A stretch of 63,365 nt of DNA, filler included, from Dugesia japonica (Eukaryota): NCBI GenBank assembly GCA_001938525.1. It is 5 parts of 5 records of this genome, joined end to end, with 100 filler letters (N's around TTAATTAATTAA, not from the genome) between each part and the next. Parts side by side here need not be neighbours in the genome. Positions count along the whole stretch, not along the records: positions 17,815 to 30,806 come from MQRL01584079.1; 4 more parts are not named here. One strand, 5' to 3'. Within the stretch, counting starts at the first letter, position 1. Each line of letters starts with the position of its first letter. Below, in pieces: positions 17,815-30,806 of this stretch. The notes beneath the pieces were generated by a model that did no database searches, was not told the DNA's origin, and saw only the letters and a program-made list of their open reading frames with translations. Both the position numbers and the translations under genes were made by a program.

Positions 17815-18189
17815 TGAATTTTGAAAATCGATCAATGGTTACGTTCAACATTTATTCTCGCAATAATTGCAATTGTAAAATATTTGTTTATTAATTATTT
17901 ATTTATTTGCGTATATTCAATTGACATTGACGTACATACACCCAACCTTGAAATTTTCTAGAAATCATAATTGAATATATTAGATGACTGACCATTAAAA
18001 ATTTGACCTTGACCTGTAAATTTGATTTAGTGCGTCTCTATTTACTAACTAATTCTTATCTTATTGTCATATTTCTAAAAGCTTGTACATCTGTGAGAAA
18101 GTACAAAAACAATATTTCATTGAATTTTAAAACAATAACAATTATTCAAAGTACAGTTCATGATTATTTACCACTTTTTGCCATTGGTC

Positions 18190-18910
18190 TACAGGTCTAC
18201 GAATCTATTTAAAGTATCAATTTGGCTTCTTCGGATGAGAGAACTAATCCCCAGCTTTTTCTACTTAAATTTATTCAAAGTATTGACGATTCAGAATGTG
18301 CTGCATATATCTGAAAGGATCTTGGTTCGATTGGTCAATGTCTTAGCTGCATGGTGAATGTAGCATATTCTTGACACCGTCTAAATTCTCAAATCTATCC
18401 TTAGTATTACTGTTCGTATGTAACTTGATGTTGTCTTCGCGGTTCCAACTGAGTAAAGTCAGGTAATTCTCTCCAATGTATTGTAAACACGGTCAATTTT
18501 TGATAGTAGAATTGAGCATTGATAGCACGACCATTCGAAACTAGTTCAAAGTGAAATACGTATTTAAAATTCCACCAGACACAAATAATGGTATTCTTGT
18601 GAAATTGATCTTGATGTGGAACTAATGTCATCGTATAACCTAGTAAAACCCATATTTGTTCTGATTATGATTTGCCAGAAACTCTCAATTCTCGTTCAAG
18701 TTATCAATTCACTTGTAATAAGAGTCGTACAATGGATTTCTGAGAAGTTGATCACAGCTTTATACACTCGTGTAGATCTTGACAGGACTTTTTGTAGGAA
18801 TAACCATGTTAGTAAAGATGAAGGTGAATCGTCAATTTTTTGTGATAGCGTATTTCAGAAATTGAAGAGAAACAGTTTAATTAATTTTAGCAAAGCAGAT
18901 GCATACAAAA
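18190..18910 (-). pseudogene. Mariner transposase remnant
   Basis: HKNTIICVWWNFKYVFHFELVSNGRAINAQFYYQKL matches the mariner K.M..VWW...G..H.E.L..G.TI...Y..QL block. Confidence 0.85.
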
Positions 18911-19020
18911 CTAGAGAAATTGAATTTTCATTTTTGTAATTGTAATATTTAAATCAATTTCTCTCAAATACTTTTAAAATATTTTTATTGAGATTTAACA
19001 AATCCATTTTTTTAATTTAG

Positions 19021-19284
19021 AAATTGAAAAATGCAAACTCACCAGTCATGGTAGTGAATATATTGGGACGATGAGCAAAACCTTTAATGGTAAATCATGC
19101 ATTCCTTGGAAGAAAGCATATATAGATGGGTTAAGTCTATCTAGCAGCTATTATTACGATGAATCTGCTATCACTGATATCGTATTTTGTAGAAATCCAA
19201 CACAATTTCCTAAAGGACCATGGTGTTTTGTTAATAAAAATACTTTAGAGTGGGAGTATTGCAACATTCCAAGTTGTGTTAAAG
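19021..19284 (+). CDS. Kringle-domain protein, exon with kringle 1
   Basis: TTTAG acceptor; CKLTSHGSEYIGTMSKTFNGKSCIPW...FCRNPTQFPKGPWCFV...WEYCNIPSC (six kringle Cys); GTATGA donor 19285. Confidence 0.93.
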
Positions 19285-19333
19285 GTATGATTATAAATAT
19301 ATAAGCATAAATTACAACAAAAAGACATTAAAG

Positions 19334-19573
19334 AAAGACATTGGTGCAAAACATCAGATGAAGGTACAGAATATATGGGTTCAATAAATTATACAATGCG
19401 TGGAAAAACTTGCAAGGCATGGGTTGATAAAGGAGTATACAGGGATGAATTATTTCCAGAGAAAAGCATGCTTATTGCTGGTAACAAATGTCGAAATCCA
19501 GAAAATATGCAAGCACCATGGTGTTTTTATGATTATAGTTGGGAATTTTGCAATATTCCAGAATGTGAGAAAA
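19334..19573 (+). CDS. Kringle-domain protein, exon with kringle 2
   Basis: CKTSDEGTEYMGSINYTMRGKTCKAW...NKCRNPENMQAPWCFYDYSWEFCNIPEC; in-frame AAG acceptor at 19333 (alternative 19324); GT donor 19574. Confidence 0.9.
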
Positions 19574-19619
19574 GTTAATTTAATAATTACNNATTTTTTA
19601 TTTAATATATTCATTTTAG

Positions 19620-19742
19620 AATTCAGTCAAGTTGACTTCTTTGGAGGTTATGATTTTCTAAAATCTAATCTTAAATACACTAAAATCATACCATTGAATG
19701 AATTATATCAAAGTTTAATGGTTACGGTCTCAGTTCATATAG
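19620..19742 (+). CDS. Kringle-domain protein, linker exon
   Basis: TTTTAG acceptor, phase-compatible with both neighbours (46- and 47-nt introns); FSQVDFFGGYDFLKSNLKYTKII. Confidence 0.75.
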
Positions 19743-19789
19743 GTTAAAAGATGAGTGATTTTATTTCACTGATAAATTTAATAATTTAG

Positions 19790-20067
19790 TTTTGTGGCAA
19801 TGGGATGTTCGCCGTAAAACTTCAATGTGGGCAACTGATTATGATCTGAAGTGTCAAACAGATATGAATTCTTATGAATATTGTGAAATGTATAGAAGTA
19901 CGAAGTCATATGATCATATTATTCTAACCTATTGGTGTCGTCGACCCCTTAGATATCTAATTTTTATATCTTCCATAATACATTCCTCTTTTCATATAAC
20001 GTATTCGGGAACAGTTTATAAGCCGAAAATACAATTAAGTGAAGATTTTTTAAAATATCAAGAAAAG
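19790..20067 (+). CDS. Kringle-domain protein, exon with unassigned Cys/Trp-containing domain
   Basis: TTTAG acceptor 19788-19789; LWQWDVRRK..KCQTD..YC..LTYWCRRPLRYL; AAG|GTAAAG donor at 20068, phase 0. Confidence 0.78.
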
Positions 20068-21049
20068 GTAAAGTTATTAATAAATAAATTTTATAGAGAA
20101 ATTGTTATAAATGTATGAAAGATATAAAAATATTATTTAGCACATTAATATTAAAAACCTTATGAGGAAAAGTTAAAATAGTAAATAAAAATTTAGTTTC
20201 TCAACGGTTGTTTTAATAACTGAAAATAGAAAAAGTGGGGATTAAGATTGTATTTGAAAATTGTATTGTGATATAAAAACCTTTTTTTTTGAACTGTTAA
20301 TTGAAGCTAGTTATTCTGTAAATTTTGGTGCCATAGTTACTTGGCATTATTGCTATTTATTGAAAATACTATTTAGACTTACGTGAGTACTGTTCTGATA
20401 TTTTATTGTGGTTAATTTATTAGTTGTAAATTTCATCGTTACTGTTAAATATTTTGAAATATAAAAATATTTATTAAATATTATTGCCAACTATTGTCTT
20501 TTATTAATAGCAATTATTACTGAGAAATAATAAAATCAAAATTCTTTAAAAATATTATTTTAACTTTTCCTCAATTATTTGTTATTTAGATTAATTATTT
20601 TAACGATGACAACGACTCCGTTATCCTCTAACAAACGTAATTATTTATGCTTTAAAATTTACATTAATAAATCATTTTTTATTTAAAACCACGTGTAATT
20701 TTATAAGATTTTCATGGTAAATAAAGTTTAAAAAATGGATTAAATCAGACATGTCAAACTCAGTGTACCTTGATAGTCAAATAGGTCGCAAGAATATAGT
20801 GGCGAGGGCTATGATACATTTTAATAAATACATTTTAGGAAATGTATTGTAAAATATTTATGTAACGTTTATAAATGCACCGAAAGGAAATAGCATTACA
20901 AAAATTAAATTTTAAAGTAGGAATGCATATACAGGGCTTGTATCATCAATGAACATTGTACCATTAAGAAATGGCTGTATTAATAATTTGGCTTTTATTT
21001 CCGGAAATTAAGTAATCAGGTATCTTTATAGAAATAAAATAGAAGTATA

Positions 21050-21800
21050 GGGTAATTTACATAATTTGCATAAAAGTCAATAAAAAATTTCGAAAATTAT
21101 ATAGAAGTCATTAAAAATTTAACAAATTGTATTGAAGGTTTCAAAAGCTCTTGTAAAATATTGGGAATATAACTCAACAATTACATAAAAGTCAATAAAT
21201 ATTTAGAGAGATTACATAGATAAATAGTAGAATTCATAGAAGTTACATAAAAGTATAGAGAAATTTATAAAAATTGCACAGCAGTCAATATAATATTTCA
21301 GAGATTACATAGCAACCAAAAATATGTTTCGACAATTACATAAAAGTCATTACACATTTACTAAGATTACATAGAAATATATAAATAGAAATATATATCC
21401 ATTACATTAAATTGTAATATCATATACAAAATTCTAAGCTAAAATATATCAGTTAATAGTAATCGTAATAGTTAATATAAGATTCATTATTTAAAAAAAG
21501 TCACTAAGTCATAGAAATCTACCACTTCAACATAGAAAATAGATACATCAACCTGAATATATTGAATTCATTCTAAATTATACATTGAACATAACTTTCA
21601 CTATCGAACTTAAAATATAAAATATATAAATTTTGTCACTTAAAATGTATATGCCTTTAAATTACAACTTAAAGTTCAAAATCTTGAAATTTATCACCTT
21701 GAAATAATATGAATCAATGTTAACCAGCTTAAAACTAATATGAATTAAAATTTATCAGTTTCAATTTAATATGAATTAAAATCTTAGGTCATAAATTTAT
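21050..21800. repeat. Two degenerate minisatellite arrays with ~31-bp and ~30-bp period
   Basis: ATTACATA-like core recurs at ~21180, 21211, 21243, 21272, 21304, 21335, 21367; CTT(A/G)AA core recurs at ~21609, 21639, 21668, 21698, 21728. Confidence 0.65.
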
Positions 21801-22466
21801 AATTAATAAATTAATTTTTTGTTTAGTTATGTTAAATTAAAAATATATCTGAAAATAAATTAATTTATTATTAGTAAATAGAAATTAATCTGTTTAATCT
21901 GATTAATTAAATATGTCCGAAATGAAATGATGTGTGCATCGATTACATATATAAGCAAGATGCATACATCATTTAAACATTTTAAGAAAATCAACTAAGA
22001 TTTTTATTTAATTTGTTATATAATTAATTTTATTTTATATTATTTATGAAAACGCATTAAATATAATCAATGTTTTTGGAAATGTGAAAACTTATTATGA
22101 AATTTATGAACTATGAAAATAAGTAAGGATTTATTTTATTTAAATTAAATGGTAATAATTTTTGTTTAAACAGTATTTATGGTAATGGTAATTAATTTTA
22201 ACAATATTTAAACGATAATGAATTTATTTTAAGTTAACAATTTTAAAATTAATAATTTTGTTGGGCTTCGAGGTTTTTGAGGTTTTATTTATTCTTGACC
22301 TAATGTCGTTTTTTTCATTAATCCTAATTTTCTAGAGGTAGATGCCTCGAAGGCTGTAAAAATTTAATCAACACCATTCGTGTTGAGATCACCTACTCAG
22401 TGGCCTATATGAGACTATGGGCACTACAGAAAGTCTACTAAGTTTCGTTTTACTTCTTTCGTAGTA

Positions 22467-22578
22467 CAGTCACCCCCTCTCAATATCGCCACCTCTCTAC
22501 ACCGCAACCCCACTCAACCGCCAAAATTATTTATTTTAAGCAATTCCCGAATTTGGGCGGTATAGGNAGTGTTGACTG
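22467..22578. mobile_element. Tc1/mariner-pogo type MITE
   Basis: TA-flanked; CAGTCACCCCCTCTCAATATCGCC ... GGCGGTATAGGNAGTGTTGACTG imperfect TIRs; a more decayed related hairpin follows at ~22615-22697. Confidence 0.65.
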
Positions 22579-22949
22579 TAGTTATTTAAACGATTAATAT
22601 TTTATACTTTTACTTAAATCACACTCATTTTTACCGCCATAAATTTTTGTTTACTAATTTGCACGAATTTAGGCGATATAACAAGGGTGGATTGTATTTA
22701 AATTTTGCTAATAACCAAAATAAATTTCTATTATTTAAATCTTTATCATACTTAATTAGAAGACATTTTGCTTTTTATTTTGGACAACATTCGTTTAATA
22801 ACACATTTTGGGAGTTTAAGTTATTTCGTTTAAATATTAACGTTATACGCACAACATTCTTTTTTCTCAGATCTATATTATGAATAAGTGATTTAAATGA
22901 ATAAAAAATTGCTAAGAAATTATATTTATACGTATACATATAGCTGTTA

Positions 22950-23545
22950 CATTGGGGTCTCTCCTAGTTCTTTTAACTATGAGATGAGGGTTGGCATCAC
23001 CCCTTTAATGTTAGCTTCCAATTGTTTGCTCAATTAATTATGTGATAGTAGCCTCATTTCAAATATGGTTTCTCGTTTGGTGATCGTTGGTGGATTTCTC
23101 AGGTGGTTAGATATCCACAATAATAGATCGGCTAGATCTACACTTTGTTTATTTCGTTCGTGTTTCTGTGACACTAGCTGCTCCTTTAGTTACGTAGCTT
23201 TAATATTTCTTTCTTCTGCTCTTGAATGTTTAAATCTCGTAGATGGAGTTGATTAGCAGAGACCCACCCCTGATCTCTATGAGTTCCAAAATCTGATCAT
23301 GTATCGTATAGCATTGGCATGACATTAGATGGTGACGTGATGAATCTCCAGCCATTTAACGATCTGATTGCCTCTTCATCTGTGAAATTCTTAGCTAAAT
23401 CTAAGTTAATTTTAATCATAAATATTATTCACATTATCATACAGAATTGTTGATTATATTAATTTATATACAAGGTTCAGAATTTGTTATTTATCAAATA
23501 ATCCAAATTTTAGGTAGATATTAAACTTATTCTGTTATCACATCA
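22950..23545 (-). mobile_element. Probable LTR-retrotransposon gag-region remnant
   Basis: Coding-like composition with broken frames on the minus strand, and a TGTGATAA start on minus at ~23541 like the LTR start at 29030; no diagnostic motif. Confidence 0.3.
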
Positions 23546-25739
23546 AAGACAAATATGTATTTCTTATACGAGCAAGGAGGCGAGAATCCGCTGTGAACCT
23601 TTCATCACTTATTGTATTCAGAGACTAACACTTCCTAAATCGTTTCTGATTATTAAGATTTTAGATGATTTTGAGTCGCGTTTATATATTTTACATCACT
23701 TTATTACATTGGTCTAGACAATTTAAGAAAGTTGATAAAAATTCTTTTTCAATAAGAAATGATTTATAACAGTAATAAAAATTTATGGCTCGTTGATCGC
23801 CTATTTCAATTTAAATTTCTTTCATCATTTCAAATTGACGGAATAAAGTGCTCTTCGTATCTATCATGTTTAAAAAGCAAAGAAATATTCATTAAAATCT
23901 GACTTTATGTACTCATTTATATTCATTTATACTCATTTGATATTCTAAATTGGTCAGAAGACTATCAAAAACCAATAAGAATGACTCTGAAAGAAGAAAA
24001 CACCAAAGAAAAGACCAATGAAATGTTATAAAATAATTAATGTTTGTTATTATCAACAGTGTTTTCTTCGTTTTTATAATTTCAATAAAACTTCAACACA
24101 TATACGATATTTGTAAATTTTAATTGATATGATTGGTTAAATGCAATAGGTTTGCAACACAAGTGTAACTTAAAATCACTTGACTGATGATTTTAATACT
24201 ACCATAATCAATAAATTGCTTATATAACTAGTTTTTGCAACATGATTGAATAAACCATGCAACATGTATGCAACACGCATGCAAATCAAGACTATCTAAA
24301 CAAAAATATCAAGACCATTCATTTAATAGAATCTCACCTCTTGATTTTTAAAAATTTTTACACACGTATCTTGCACNNNNNNNNNNNNNNNNNNNNNNNN
24401 NNNNNNNNNNNNNNNNNNNNNNNNNNNNNNNNNNNNNNNNNNNNNNNNNNNNNNNNNNNNNNNNNNNNNNNNNNNNNNNNNNNNNNNNNNNNNNNNNNNN
24501 NNNNNNNNNNNNNNNNNNNNNNNNNNNNNNNNNNNNNNNNNNNNNNNNNNNNNNNNNNNNNNNNNNNNNNNNNNNNNNNNNNNNNNNNNNNNNNNNNNNN
24601 NNNNNNNNNNNNNNNNNNNNNNNNNNNNNNNNNNNNNNNNNNNNNNNNNNNTTAAAACAAAATTTAAAATTCATAAAAATTCAATCATAAATTAAAACAA
24701 AAAAAGAAAAATTAAAGAAAAATAAAATTTTTTGATCCGATCAAAAATCTGATCTGATCAAAAGTCTTAAAATTTAAAATCCACGATAACGTATAACATA
24801 CTTTTTAAACTGTGTTGTTTTTTCGCTAAGGAGGAGGGGGTGTGCCAGTGCGCTCACTTCTAAATAATAACAATGTCTGAATGATAAACGAATAAACCCA
24901 ATATATTCAATTCGGAAGGAATAACAATTTACAAACCATTAGTAGAAACAAAATTAGTACATATTAAAAAACAAGAAACAAAATGATGGTGGTGGTAATT
25001 TCAGACGATTTTCACGAAGTATTCTTTACATCAAGATAATTTTAAGGGGTCCATCAAATTTTCGACGGCAAATTATGCACTCAATGCGGGAATTTGTAAT
25101 GAATGATGTGATAAGTGTTTTTCAAATAATTGCATCACAATAGTGGAAAATATCGATGAAAAAAAATTTCAAGAAGCTCTTGTAGATATGGCAAAAGCAA
25201 TGAACCTAGAAGCAAAGAAACGAATACTCGAAAGACATTTCCTATACAAATTAAAAACAAGANNNNNNNNNNNNNNNNNNNNNNNNNNNNNCCAAAACAA
25301 AATGGAAATTTCTGTGGGCTGCACAATTACCGATAATAAGTATGTTGTGTAAAGAGGCTGCAACTATTGTTGTTGGAGCTGCTACAGGAAATGATACAAA
25401 AAAACTATTGATTCTGTATTGACAATTTAAATTCTTTTTGAAATTGCAATATAGATGGGTATTGCACCTTCTAATATTCCAGAGATTTCATTAGATATTT
25501 GTTGCTTTTATTTTGCGTAATCAAGTAGATGGAACAACTGTGATACAATACAAAGGAGCTAGTTAGATATACCGGTATTTCAAAGCTTACAAATGATACA
25601 AATTGTTTGGTAAAAGAGACAAAGAAATGGTTAGATAATCAGTTGGCGTATAGTTTGAAAAGACCAATAATACGCAAATACATTGTTGCTAGTGTTAATT
25701 GACTATGGAAAATGGATTTGATGGAAATGAATCCATATA

Positions 25740-26412
25740 CAAGCATAAATAATTATTATAGATACATTTTGACATCTATATTTTGACATGTCTTGATATA
25801 TTCAGTCGATTTGCTCGTGCAGTTCCAGTAAAACGAAAATCTAGTAAAGATATATTGTTAGCTTTAACGGTGATTTTCAAAGATCGTCACCAGAAATCTA
25901 TTCAAATAGATTTGGGTAAAGAACTTTACAATACCTAGTAAAATCATTACTAAAACAATATAGTATACTGCACTATTCAGTATTTTATCAGTACAAGACT
26001 GATCTAGTTAAGCGATTTAATCAAACCCTACGCACTAGATTAACCAAATTATTTATCAAATAAGGTAACAAAAAATGGATACATGTTTTCCAAAGATTAT
26101 TTATGCATAAAATCATTCTGAGCACAGAGGTATTGGAGGAGGAAATAAACCAGTTAATGTTACAGATATTGGTGATGAGGCACAGTACTTCATCAAAAAT
26201 AAACCAAAACCAAAATATAAAATTGGACAACATGTACAGATTTCCAGAACTAGAACTATATCATTCATCAAAACCTTTGATAATAACTGGAGTGATGAAG
26301 GCTTTCAAATATCTGAAATCAACACTAGACAGACCCCAGTCATGTATGTAATACGTGATGAAGCTGGTAATAATATCAAGGCCCATTTTTTTAAGGAGTA
26401 ATTACAAGTTTA
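25740..26412 (+). pseudogene. Maverick/Polinton-type c-integrase remnant
   Basis: YILTCLDIFSRFARAVPVKRKS..IQIDLGKELYN..VKRFNQTLRTRL..KWI..F..NWSDEGFQISEI..TPVMYVIRDEAGNNIKAHFFKE.LQV; the C-terminal NW..E.F...P..Y...D..G..I...FY..ELQ tail is characteristic of Polinton integrases. Confidence 0.82.
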
Positions 26413-26439
26413 TAATTATAATTATTGTATGAAAATCAG

Positions 26440-27263
26440 GTTGATCTTTCAGGTTTCTTCTCTTTTATAATATTTACTCATGCTTTTTTCTGAAAAATGC
26501 AGAAATGTAGCTTGATCCTAAACTTTTCCATGAAATATGATTATTTTCTTGTAAAGCGTTATGTTTCTATAGAAAGATTTTTAAGACTTCACTTTCTTTC
26601 TGTTTGAGATGTTCTATAATTTTTGTACGGATGGTTCGGCATGATTATTTTTTATATGTATCCTTACATAAAGAGCATGTTATTTTGTAAGCGATATTCT
26701 TTTATTGCATATATTTCTACTATAAAAAATGCATTTGGCTCCACAAAACGTCTGTCCTGGTTTCTGTGATTGGATACCGAAAGGTGCTTGCTTTTTAAAT
26801 ATAATTCTTGGGTTGTGTTTGAGTTTCGATTTTTTATTATATTTCCCACGATTACGCATTATTAAAAGGTAATTTAATTACTGTGTTTGTCTTTGGTTTG
26901 ATTTAATTAAATTTTGTATTCGAGGATAGATATTTAGATACAATTCTATTTGGATAACCATTATTTAGAAATTTATGTTTTAGCAACCTGTAGGAAGTCA
27001 ATCTCATCTCTTCATTTGAAGACAGTCTTTCAGCTCTTATTCTTTTACCCTTATGATGGTAGTGTCTGATGGTAGTATTACTACTTCACGGTAATATAAA
27101 TCCACTGTGAAATGGTTTCATATATAACTGGGTAATTTATAATTCACCAGGTTTCTTTTGGATTAATGTGTCCAGAAAAGGTATCTGAAAGTCGATTGAC
27201 TTTTCTAAAGTGAATTTGATCTTATCATCAATACTATTGGATAGTTCTAAAATATTTTCTAAA
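26440..27263 (-). mobile_element. Penelope-like element, second decayed copy
   Basis: Reverse complement aligns by eye with 3350-4150 (DKIKFTLEK, IPFLDTLI, YMKPFHSG, GIY-YIG remnant). Confidence 0.88.
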
Positions 27264-29070
27264 TGCATCAAAGGATTGATGAGTTTCTTGAGAATATTTT
27301 GCTATTACAGAAAATTCATAAATGATTACACAAAGAAAAGTAGATAACTAGAAAAACTGTGCAGTGTAAATAATAAGAAGTTAATATGGACAGAGAGCTG
27401 CGAACAATCATTCAGAAATATGAAAGAAGCGTTAACAAAGCCACCAATTATAGTGTTTCCGGATGTCAGAAGAGAATTCATACTGGATACGTATGTACGT
27501 TACAATACAATTAGTGCAGTATTATCACAAATTGATAACAATGAACAAGAAAGAGCGATAGTTTATGGATCACACGCAATAAATAACCACGAATTTGGAT
27601 ATTGTACAGCAAGAAAGGAACGTCTGGCAATAGTTTATTTTTGCAATCATTTTTGTCACTACTTATATGGGTGAAGATTCACTCTACGGACAGATCATAA
27701 GGCGATTACATTTATGCTAACTACGAATAAACTAATAACGACATAGTTTCAAAATGGATCAAATACCTATGTGGATTAGACATTGATTTACAGTATCGAA
27801 AAGGCAACAAACATGACAATGCGTGTAGTGCAGGGTGATACACAAAGATCCTATAGGGGGAAAATTGAAAACGATACGTTTGAATACAATAACGGAGATA
27901 TGAAAATAACAAAGAGATACTAAAGAGATACGAATAATACGGGAACAAATCAAAGATGGTAATGAAGAAAGATTGCAATAGATAGATGGTCAGATATTAA
28001 CACAAAAGGGAAAGATATCGATACTAACAGATAAAAAATAGGATATGATAAGAGAAATGTACCAGTTTCTAACACACGAAGGAACAGAAAAAGTGGCCAA
28101 ATTTATTAGGGAACTTTATGAAATGACTAGGTTGTAGGGAATTGTAAAGAAAATTGTGAACAGATGAGAAGCATGTCAGCGAGTGAATGTGGTAACAACT
28201 AAAACAAAAGAAAAAACTAAAAAATCTGAGTTGGCAAGGCCGCTTGAGAAAATATTTATAGATATAGCAGGACCATGGCCAGAAACTTTCCAAAAAAGAA
28301 ATATGTCGTGGCTATTATCAATCCGAATAGTAAATATATATCATTGACAGCAGCAGCAAAACAAGATGAAGAATTAATAACTCTTGTATTATCTTAACAC
28401 AAGTGTTAGAAACTGATGCGTTTCTCTTATCATATCTTATTTTTATCTGGATATTAAAAATAGGAGCTCCGAGATATATTCATACAGATAGTGGTGAGGT
28501 ATTTAAATCACAAAGAATGAAGAAATTGGCAGATAAGATGAATATTAAACTATGTTTCTCAATTCCCTATCACTATAATACAAATGGACAGGTAAAAAGA
28601 CAATTTCGGACTTTCAGAGACTAGATTGGGACATCACTAGCAGACTACAATGCAAAAAAGTGAGCAGAAATTCTATCCTTCGATTGAATTTGCGATGAAT
28701 GCGACAGTACAGAAAACAAAAGGTAAAAGCCCGGTAGAAACGGTGTTTGGTAGAATAATCAGCAGAGACAGGTCGTTTCCATCTAGAAAACTAGAGTCCA
28801 ACAGGTAGAAAATATACCGAAGGTTACGTACCCAACAAGGATAAGAGTCGTTATTGGAGATGCAATGCTTATAAAGGAGAAATCAAGAAATAGGGATCAA
28901 AATCTTTTCGTAGCTTCATTCTTAGTAGTAAAAAAGATACATGACCGTAGATATCTGATTCAAGATGATCCGGGTCGGACAATGGAAAAAAATGTTGAAA
29001 AGATCAGAAGATGTCTTAAAGAAGGGGGATGTGATGATGATATTTGAATTGTTTAATTTCAAATTTANNN
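27263..29070 (+). mobile_element. Ty3/Gypsy remnant (RT end, RNase H, integrase, PPT, start of 3' LTR)
   Basis: YYRKFI..WTESCEQSF..FILDT..ISAVLSQ..KERLAIVYFC.HF.HYLYG; GAPRYIHTDSG..F..PYH..TNGQVKR; polypurine tract AAAGAAGGGGGA (29018-29029) followed by TGTGATG. Confidence 0.92.
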
Positions 29071-30136
29071 NNNNNNNNNNNNNNNNNNNNNNNNNNNNNN
29101 NNNNNNNNNNNNNNNNNNNNNNNNNNNNNNNNNNNNNNNNNNNNNNNNNNNNNTTTGTTTGAATATTTAAACTTTTCTGATTCAGCTTTTCAATTTATAA
29201 AATTGCAAGTGATAAATTATTGATGATGACAGTGCTTTTCTTGCTAATAATGAGTATGAAAGCCTAATATCCACTAAAAATTTGAATCCCTCATCAGTAA
29301 GAGAAAGAATCAGGTTGAATACCCTTGATACAAAGAATTGCTTATTACATAATAACATAATTGTTATATGAGATTTGAGAAATCATCGGATTATCAACAT
29401 CAGAACTCGAATTCATTACAAGATTTATTAAAACAAAACTTTAAACATAAATTTCCTTTTTCCAAACAAATTTAAATAACGGAAAATACTAAATATTTAA
29501 ATTCTTAAATTTCATTAATATCTCATTTTAAAACACTAAAATAAACATATTTCATTCATTTAATTTTATATTTTATTCTATTTAAAATATATTTTGCTTT
29601 TTAATTTTTTTAATATTAAATTTTAAAACATTAAAAAACAATAATTCATTCATTTAATTTTATATTTTATTTTATTTAAAATTTTTTAAATTTTATTAAT
29701 TTTTTTTATAAAATATTTTCTTTTAACAAATTTAAATATACTTTTGACTTTAATAAATTCTTTTTTAAAAATACAAAAAAAATTTAAATATGTTTTCAAA
29801 AAAACGATCTTATAATAATAATCTATCGTTATCATAACCAGATGATATATTTTTTCCAAATTTTGCAAATTTTTTTAACAAATTGAATTTTTTTTCATTA
29901 TTTTTATTTTATTTTATAATTATTCATTTTTAAGATAAAGACTTAAGGGTTGAAATTATATACACTAAAAATGCGAACTCTAGATTTTTAAATAAATTTT
30001 CTTTTATCTTTAAATAATGTGTAAGTTATACACGAGATTTTATGTAATGTATAATTTATAATTAATTATTTTTAATAACTATATTAATTTTTAAATATAT
30101 TTTAATAAAAAAAATTTTCATTTTATTGTTATTTAG

Positions 30137-30806
30137 ATCAGAAACTTTATAGCCAGAAAAGATAGACTAATTTCAAAATTTCCAGTAGATTTACACAATG
30201 GTCATTTTTATCTGTTATATGATAATGTTATTCCGTATGCCATTACTCGAGATGATAAAGTAATGGCAACAATTTCTACTGTTGGAAAAGGTTGCGTTGC
30301 ATTTTTACATTCCCAAATACATCTTTTTCATGAATCCGGTGAACCACTAAAGGATTATACAGATCTAGCAGATTTATTTCAGCAAGTATTTAAATCACGG
30401 AAAGCAATTCCTCGAAAGTTAACTGTAGATTTTCTAAAAATATTGAAATCAAACTGGGAAACCAAAAATGATGTTTCTACGCCGGTAATATGGAAGACTG
30501 TTGAGGAAATAGGAAAACAGGGAATTGAAGTCTTACTAAACTTAATAAAAGCTGGATTAAGAATAATAATGGAAATAACTTTGTGGGAAAATCCGAAAAA
30601 TATTGTGGATAGTGAATTNCAAGTTNTATTTTTTGAATTAGGAATATGGCCATCAGTTGAGCAAGTACTTAGAAGCATAAATGTAACTAATACAGAAGAA
30701 ATCCTCACATTTCCCCTCGTTCATTTGATAGATTATGCTACAGTGAGTATATCAAATGCAATATCTGTTGCAGACACCATTAAAACTATTTTATTAAATG
30801 TACCAT
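30137..30806 (+). CDS. Large exon, probable continuation of the kringle gene; TCAF/FAM115-like N-terminal region
   Basis: TTTAG acceptor 30135-30136, phase 0 matching donor 20068; open for about 223 codons to the contig end; VIPYAITRDDKVMATISTVGKGCVAFLH and LLNLIKAGLRIIMEITLW resemble TCAF motifs. Exon is well supported, family call is tentative. Confidence 0.7.

Follow-up and report, generated by a model that had tools for sequence, protein, structure and literature searches.

Does a kringle-encoding block in the genome of Dugesia japonica belong to the same gene as a TCAF-like exon that lies about 10 kb further on, and would such a gene encode a kringle-bearing metallopeptidase? The question is raised by the piece at positions 17815-30806 (record MQRL01584079.1) of a stretch of 63,365 nucleotides (nt) from assembly GCA_001938525.1. 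This whole stretch is called the window, and all coordinates refer to it. The initial annotation had described four short-intron exons on the plus strand, two kringles, a Cys/Trp-rich domain without family assignment, a transposon-filled interval of about 10 kb and a long open phase-0 exon at 30137, and had proposed that these parts form a kringle protein fused to a TCAF/FAM115 region. All five elements were found again, with slightly refined exon coordinates (Table 1). We favour, with moderate confidence, the reading that the kringle block and the block encoding a TCAF_N-type domain are joined in one mRNA and make up the 5' half of a single gene.

A database protein with both blocks in one chain

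The two blocks have a common counterpart in UniParc UPI0005FFB7D8 (P0001), a nameless, uncharacterised protein fragment of 919 amino acids (aa). Its single chain contains, in this order, a kringle (residues 39-112), a Cys/Trp domain, a homologue of the 30137 exon, an M60-like_N domain (516-604) and a Peptidase_M60 domain (687-842) with the motif HEVGH. The chain starts inside a first kringle, its N-terminus being missing. The tblastn matches between P0001 and the piece are all collinear and on one strand (Table 1), with 36-57% identity to the window exons. The shared order is kringle, kringle, Cys/Trp domain, TCAF_N-like domain, M60-like_N and Peptidase_M60, the last two seen in P0001. P0001 differs from the window in two respects: it lacks the 41-aa exon C, and its sequence runs on without a break at the place where 10 kb of transposon DNA separate the two blocks of the window. 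In the tblastn comparison, no P0001-like coding segment was seen inside this interval. The kringle-to-M60 architecture that had been suspected from the window thus exists as one chain, HEVGH included.

The catalytic domain does not lie in the piece; the contig ends at 30806. M60-like_N (PF17291) and Peptidase_M60 (PF13402) are present both in P0001 and in a second relative, P0002. In the zincin motif of P0001, HEVGH is followed by a glutamate 26 residues past the second histidine, in agreement with the pattern HEXXHX(8,28)E, and HExGH with a glutamate 26 residues later is invariant in P0001, P0002 and two bacterial proteins, P0007 and P0008. A segment of about 35 aa including GYMHSGYP, kept in P0002, P0007 and P0008, is absent from P0001 around residues 695-705; most likely, the P0001 gene model missed the exon that holds it. 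A search for contigs encoding P0001 found no locus on record. Homologue searches with the whole of P0001 were dominated by plasminogens, and a search with region 115-919 returned P0001 alone.

Evidence for a TCAF_N-type domain in the 30137 exon

The open reading frame (ORF) at 30137 opens directly after TTATTTAG and has no stop in the 223 codons that remain before the piece ends, of which two (at 30619 and 30626) contain a single N letter each. Its first ATG does not occur before residue 43, already inside conserved sequence. As no start codon precedes the conserved residues, the ORF needs an upstream exon. Near 30743 there is a good-looking internal donor, but the match to P0001 extends to 30805, indicating that this donor is not the exon end.

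When the 30137 exon was used as the query of an exhaustive HMMER search, three proteins were returned, namely P0001 (E = 3.5e-32, 38% identity), P0002 (E = 1.2e-11) and P0003 (E = 7e-4). The last of these, a NACHT-LRR protein, was rejected as a leucine-rich chance match. Pfam, in a set without PF27016 (TCAF_N), gave no match for exon C, exon D or the 30137 exon, even at E values up to 1, and PF27016 is also missing from the precomputed Pfam lists of P0001 and P0002, suggesting that their N-terminal domain is divergent. An ESM Atlas feature search with the first 160 aa of the exon yielded nothing usable. The Atlas model of P0001 residues 205-520 matched Chordata clusters of the type TCAF_N/TCAF_helical/Peptidase_M60 (template modelling (TM) score 0.74 by query, 297 residues aligned), as well as bacterial TCAF_N/M60 clusters (TM 0.70-0.72) and IMPa-type clusters.

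For a comparison of profiles, 80 bacterial TCAF_N loci were retrieved, and 81 N-terminal regions entered the analysis. With hhalign, an alignment of the window exon, P0001 and P0002 matched these regions over 266 collinear columns (P = 7e-4) with a score of 33.5, compared with 13.6±2.5 (maximum 21.5) for 100 column shuffles and 12.5 for the reversed query. An AlphaFold model of the exon based on a 29-sequence alignment reached a predicted local distance difference test score (pLDDT) of 78 and a predicted TM score of 0.71; since this alignment includes bacterial TCAF_N sequences, the model and the profile comparison are only partly independent lines of evidence. A model from a 3-sequence alignment (pLDDT 50) was discarded. 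In a Foldseek search of the PDB, the top five matches of the exon model were all IMPa of Pseudomonas aeruginosa (E ~1e-3, probability 1.00). VIA-align gave Z scores of 9.5-10.5 for IMPa and 4.2 for the next entry, the N-terminal region of IMPa being the sole clear match in the PDB.

The motifs that had initially been read as echoes of TCAF (VGKG, LIKAG...W and LGIW) correspond to near-invariant columns of the family alignment, among which are G50, G52, G140, W150 and G169. Profile and structural model, compared with TCAF/M60 proteins, agree with that first impression. Together they support homology of the 30137 exon to the N-terminal domain found in peptidases of the TCAF/M60 type, and a shared fold is predicted.

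Kringles, a cassette exon and a conserved Cys/Trp domain

The G+C content of the piece is about 28%, and the introns of the kringle block measure about 46-49 nt. Both kringles are complete according to Pfam (PF00051, gathering threshold 34.3 bits), with E = 2.9e-18 and 66.4 bits for K1 and E = 5.4e-14 and 52.7 bits for K2. The six cysteines in each align with those of plasminogen kringles, as for the three disulfides expected of the fold, and the nearest solved relatives of both are the kringles of plasminogen and HGF. K2 is 43% identical to its counterpart in P0001 (tblastn). K1 is entered in phase 1, and at least one upstream exon is therefore missing. At 18407-18631 on the minus strand, about 400 nt 5' of K1, lies the remnant of a mariner-type transposase (Pfam Transposase_1, E = 1.5e-8), which may separate K1 from the missing first exon.

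Exon C is probably real in this genome rather than a chance ORF, because its flanking GT..AG introns resemble the confirmed 49-nt intron between K1 and K2 and because no equivalent cassette (phase-compatible AG..GT, open, at least 123 nt) was seen in about 1,000 background AT-rich windows of 216 nt. It is missing in P0001, in which the K2 homologue passes without a gap into the homologue of exon D. Exon D itself is 46% identical to P0001 residues 116-215 (tblastn), with its three cysteines and the tryptophans conserved. Its counterpart in P0001 had no match in the ESM Atlas, leaving the domain without a family as first described. Apart from the two N letters within the TCAF_N-type exon, lone or paired N letters occur at 19591-19592 and 22567. 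These isolated letters indicate that the local consensus quality of the assembly is modest.

Table 1. Features of the piece 17815-30806 in window coordinates, and its matches to P0001
Feature	Position	Strand	Description
Exon K1	19021-19284	+	kringle 1; six Cys; phase 1 to 1; donor AAG/GTATGA
K1-K2 intron	19285-19333	+	49 nt; GT..AG; absent from RNA-type contig
Exon K2	19334-19573	+	kringle 2; six Cys; phase 1 to 1
Exon C	19620-19742	+	123 nt; probable 41-codon cassette; phase 1 to 1; GT..AG introns of 46 and 47 nt on either side
Exon D	19790-20067	+	conserved domain of ~95 aa; three Cys and several Trp; phase 1 to 0; then GTAAAG
In-frame continuation of exon D	20068-20115	+	VKLLINKFYREIVINV; stop codon 20116-20118
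Non-coding interval	20116-30136		~10 kb; decayed LTR-retrotransposon pieces; three assembly gaps
Assembly gaps	24377-24651, 25263-25291, 29068-29153		all in the non-coding interval
rve fragment	25762-25935	+	Pfam on stop-to-stop pieces
RT_RNaseH fragment	27348-27671	+	Pfam on stop-to-stop pieces
rve fragment	28370-28621	+	Pfam on stop-to-stop pieces
TCAF_N-type exon	30137-30806	+	phase-0 entry; predicted TCAF_N-type domain and start of helical domain; ends at contig end
P0001 residues 1-30	end of K1	+	tblastn
P0001 residues 29-114	K2	+	tblastn
P0001 residues 116-215	exon D and next 21 nt	+	tblastn
P0001 residues 216-428	30137 exon	+	tblastn

The junction between exon D and the TCAF_N-type exon

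Exon D had been thought to end in a phase-0 donor at 20067/20068. This donor (AAG/GTAAAG) exists, but the conservation of the next seven codons argues for a donor further 3'. These codons read VKLLINK, the counterpart in P0001 is IKLILNK, and the tblastn match runs through 20088. The BLOSUM62 score of this pair is 27, a value reached by 0 of 6,172 stop-free background 7-mers, whereas the spliced alternative (20067/30137) gives IRNFIAR, with a score of 5 against IKLILNK. P0002 begins with a matching motif, MNILGK. Because VKLLINK is conserved with P0001, exon D probably extends past 20067.

Two alternative in-frame phase-0 donors, 20103/GTTATA and 20112/GTATGA, precede the stop codon at 20116, and the hexamer of the second is that of the confirmed K1 donor. 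On the other side of the interval, 30136/30137 is the sole phase-0 acceptor ahead of the TCAF_N frame. With a join of 20067 to 30137, the window and P0001 would be equal in length from QEK/QNK to the conserved G(H/Y)FYLL.

The conservation of VKLLINK right past 20067, in a frame that stops nine codons on, also fits a broken gene copy, in which a transposon hit a once-continuous coding sequence (…QEKVKLLINK / …RKDRLIS…). At most a kringle-only protein ending at 20116 would then be made, and the TCAF_N-type exon would be an orphan. The absence of reads on exon D or beyond it in the raw RNA runs, examined over 18640-20700, is in line with such a copy, as is an imperfect direct repeat at the edges of the interval (20086-20101 and 30142-30159; p ~0.016, with the region compared having been chosen after the fact). 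A model of target-site duplication was nevertheless rejected, as the repeat is only marginally unusual and its joined copies, checked by hand, do not restore the frame. Moreover, open stretches of 223 and 92 codons have persisted at 28% GC in spite of the heavy decay of the transposon pieces, and the in-frame donors at 20103 and 20112 have hexamers of the gene's other donors. We consider a broken copy unlikely. The single-gene reading draws its support from the fact that both blocks stay open in AT-rich DNA while the transposon between them decayed, and from the inability of the distal block to start translation alone. Both points suggest that selection on the gene has continued.

Transcripts and a kringle-less relative

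In the RNA-type run X8, a contig of 351 nt (depth 67) joins 19284 to 19334, and the intron between K1 and K2 is spliced out. With about 96.6% identity to the window, the contig comes from a diverged allele or strain or from a paralogue; of the seven differences listed, four are synonymous, as judged from codons read by hand. Exon D is represented in X8 by another contig, a more diverged copy whose match, 20041-20071, reads through 20067 into GTAA. Overall, divergence of the expressed X8 copies from the window amounts to 3-4% in the kringles (19102-19551) and to more than 5% in exon D, pointing to strongly divergent alleles or strains, or to paralogues of the kringle gene.

P0002 (756 aa) was derived from a transcript-like contig of 2.5 kb. 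It lacks a kringle. Stops precede its complete N-terminus, and its start coincides exactly with the start of the TCAF-like block of the window. The N-terminus (transcript 1-300) is not signal-peptide-like. Its nearest relatives are the bacterial proteins P0007 and P0008, for which PF27016 (TCAF_N) is precomputed. Being kringle-less and complete, P0002 indicates that the family has kringle-bearing members along with plain, probably cytosolic ones.

A complete, transcript-derived protein that starts exactly at the domain boundary would be expected if the locus held two genes side by side, one for a small secreted kringle protein and the other, TCAF-like and without kringles, having its own first exon hidden in the interval. 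P0001, which has no recorded provenance, would then be a prediction chimera of these two neighbours as they occur in another genome. This arrangement appears quite improbable to us. If the splice is used, there is neither a stop nor a start codon at the boundary, in the window or in P0001, and the motif at which the TCAF core starts (MNILGK/IKLILNK/VKLLINK) directly adjoins exon D in the window DNA.

The interval between the blocks

The transposon fragments in the interval, two separate stretches of integrase core (rve) and one of RT-RNaseH, are broken into short stop-to-stop pieces in differing frames. The Pfam scan of the interval found no reverse-transcriptase domain, and no pair of long terminal repeats (LTRs) was detected there either. 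The pattern suggests at least two old LTR-type elements, nested or rearranged. Inside the retroelement remnant, a 42-nt inverted repeat (28034-28075 and 28403-28444, 90% complementary, spacing 327 nt) may mark a small secondary insertion. The interval also contains two sets of degenerate tandem or direct repeats, both in very AT-rich stretches: one at 21066-21381 with a unit length of about 31 nt, the other at 29527-29705 with a copy of about 85 nt present twice.

All three assembly gaps fall in non-coding sequence, so that no reading frame crosses a gap, and the sequence is gap-free for about 4.3 kb 3' of exon D and for about 1 kb 5' of 30137. These gaps are of estimated length, and diverged copies or alleles are known from the X8 contigs with their identity of about 96.6%. 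Both points would fit a scaffold misjoin, in which blocks from different loci or paralogues were united across the N letters. However, the blocks are on the same strand and in the right order, continuing each other as in P0001. A random join is very unlikely to have produced this, and we attach very little probability to a misjoin.

Observations that weigh against a single gene

The single-gene reading has to accommodate several observations that weigh against it. At the junction, the conserved VKLLINK falls within the intron of the initial annotation, and the AG of the acceptor before 30137 is formed by the last two letters of the in-frame TAG stop codon behind which the ORF begins. The kringle and TCAF blocks are linked via presumptive scaffold joins over the three gaps. 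P0001 is a fragmentary predicted protein with no recorded source, lacking its N-terminus and about 35 aa. Coverage by RNA-type contigs is restricted to K1-K2, with no read across the junction of exon D and the TCAF_N-type exon. Read numbers in the region 18640-20700 were 0-2 for three raw RNA-seq runs, and exon C was covered neither in these runs nor in the X8 contigs. No convincing signal-peptide exon (ATG, hydrophobic stretch and phase-1 donor) was found in the 1.2 kb available at 17815-19020, and the true first exon may precede the piece.

The kringles themselves raise one more point. The lysine-binding acidic pair of plasminogen kringle 4 consists of Asp55 and Asp57, the two aspartates of NPDAD. 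This motif aligns with NPTQF in K1 and NPENM in K2, the positions of the pair being occupied by T and F/P in K1 and by E and M in K2. The acidic pair is not retained, and classical lysine binding by K1 or K2 is doubtful. The pair marks lysine-binding kringles only, not the kringle fold.

Comparison with known proteins

The vertebrate proteins TCAF1 and TCAF2 (FAM115A/C) have the core of TCAF_N, TCAF_helical and Peptidase_M60 in common with the predicted protein, but no kringles. TCAFs bind the cytosolic tails of TRPM8 (Gkika et al., PMC4284226). The metazoan M60-like proteins surveyed by Nakjang et al. (PMC3267712) had no signal peptide or transmembrane segment, the zincin motif was decayed in 36% of the vertebrate M60-like proteins, and the kringle was not among the listed M60-like architectures.

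IMPa is an M60-family metallopeptidase for which structures with O-glycopeptide and T-antigen ligands are available (PDB 5KDV, 5KDW, 5KDX, 7JTV). It superimposes on the model of the 30137 exon with a root-mean-square deviation of 3.3-3.8 Å over 156-165 aligned residues, located in about residues 78-359 of the IMPa chain. IMPa differs in being a secreted bacterial enzyme with 12-14% identity and other accessory domains, and it is kringle-free. Bacterial M60-like mucinases (such as BT4244) and the TCAF_N-M60 proteins of Verrucomicrobiota, Planctomycetota and Armatimonadota have a core of N-terminal domain, M60-like_N and Peptidase_M60 with HExxH. Their link to the window is the N-terminal domain, at the level of profiles. 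In one scan of metagenome-assembled genomes, bacterial TCAF_N-type proteins were widespread in these three phyla and in Lentisphaerota (135 candidate stretches confirmed). The targeting modules of the bacterial M60-like mucinases are carbohydrate-binding domains (PMC3267712), unlike the N-terminal modules of the window gene, which are animal kringles.

In plasminogen, HGF, prothrombin and ROR1/2, kringles precede serine-protease or kinase domains, whereas here they would precede TCAF_N and a putative metallopeptidase core. The combination of kringles with TCAF/M60 is represented by one uncharacterised database protein, P0001, in what is otherwise a known family; the literature searched contained no description of an architecture joining a kringle to M60, TCAF or enhancin.

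A possible kringle-targeted metallopeptidase

The domain identities, the splice between K1 and K2 and the collinear order with P0001 are established by the data above. The use of the junction between exon D and the TCAF_N-type exon, secretion of the product, a catalytic domain in this gene and any activity are predictions from P0001 and from the family, and the following model is conditional on them. About 10 kb of decayed retrotransposon DNA would be removed as an intron, with the acceptor at 30136/30137 and the donor at 20067 or, more likely in view of the conserved VKLLINK, at 20103 or 20112. The modules would then follow one another as kringle 1, kringle 2, the 41-aa cassette, the Cys/Trp domain of about 95 aa and an alpha/beta domain of the TCAF_N type. 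Past the contig end, by analogy with P0001, a TCAF helical domain, M60-like_N and a Peptidase_M60 gluzincin with HExxH and a downstream glutamate would be expected.

In such a protein, the disulfide-rich kringles would direct the chain to the secretory or extracellular compartment and may serve as binding modules, in a role parallel to that of the carbohydrate-binding modules of bacterial M60-like mucinases. As seen in IMPa, the TCAF_N and helical domains would pack on the catalytic domain, and glycoproteins may be the substrates that the enzyme cleaves. In its fullest form, the proposal is that the TCAF-type M60 core, in other animals kringle-less and in vertebrates active on the cytosolic tails of an ion channel, became in one animal lineage a zinc O-glycopeptidase that is secreted and targeted by kringles, an endogenous 'mucinase'. 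The halves of its gene would be united solely through the splicing of a 10-kb transposon that had inserted at or within the coding sequence, as a captured intron birth. Taken as a whole, we regard this proposal as tentative and rather doubtful. The role of a parasite host-tissue effector, also suggested in the initial annotation, is speculative.

Animal TCAF/FAM115 proteins are homologues of bacterial mucin-cleaving M60 peptidases, and they have been studied only as intracellular partners of TRP channels. For a member with two kringles, folding in the secretory pathway would be almost certain, and such a protein would be a candidate animal extracellular peptidase for glycoprotein assays. If the single-gene reading is true, this would be, according to the literature searched, the first described case of kringles on a metallopeptidase core rather than on a serine protease or kinase. 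In addition, the locus may record the survival of a gene after a large transposon insertion at a domain boundary.

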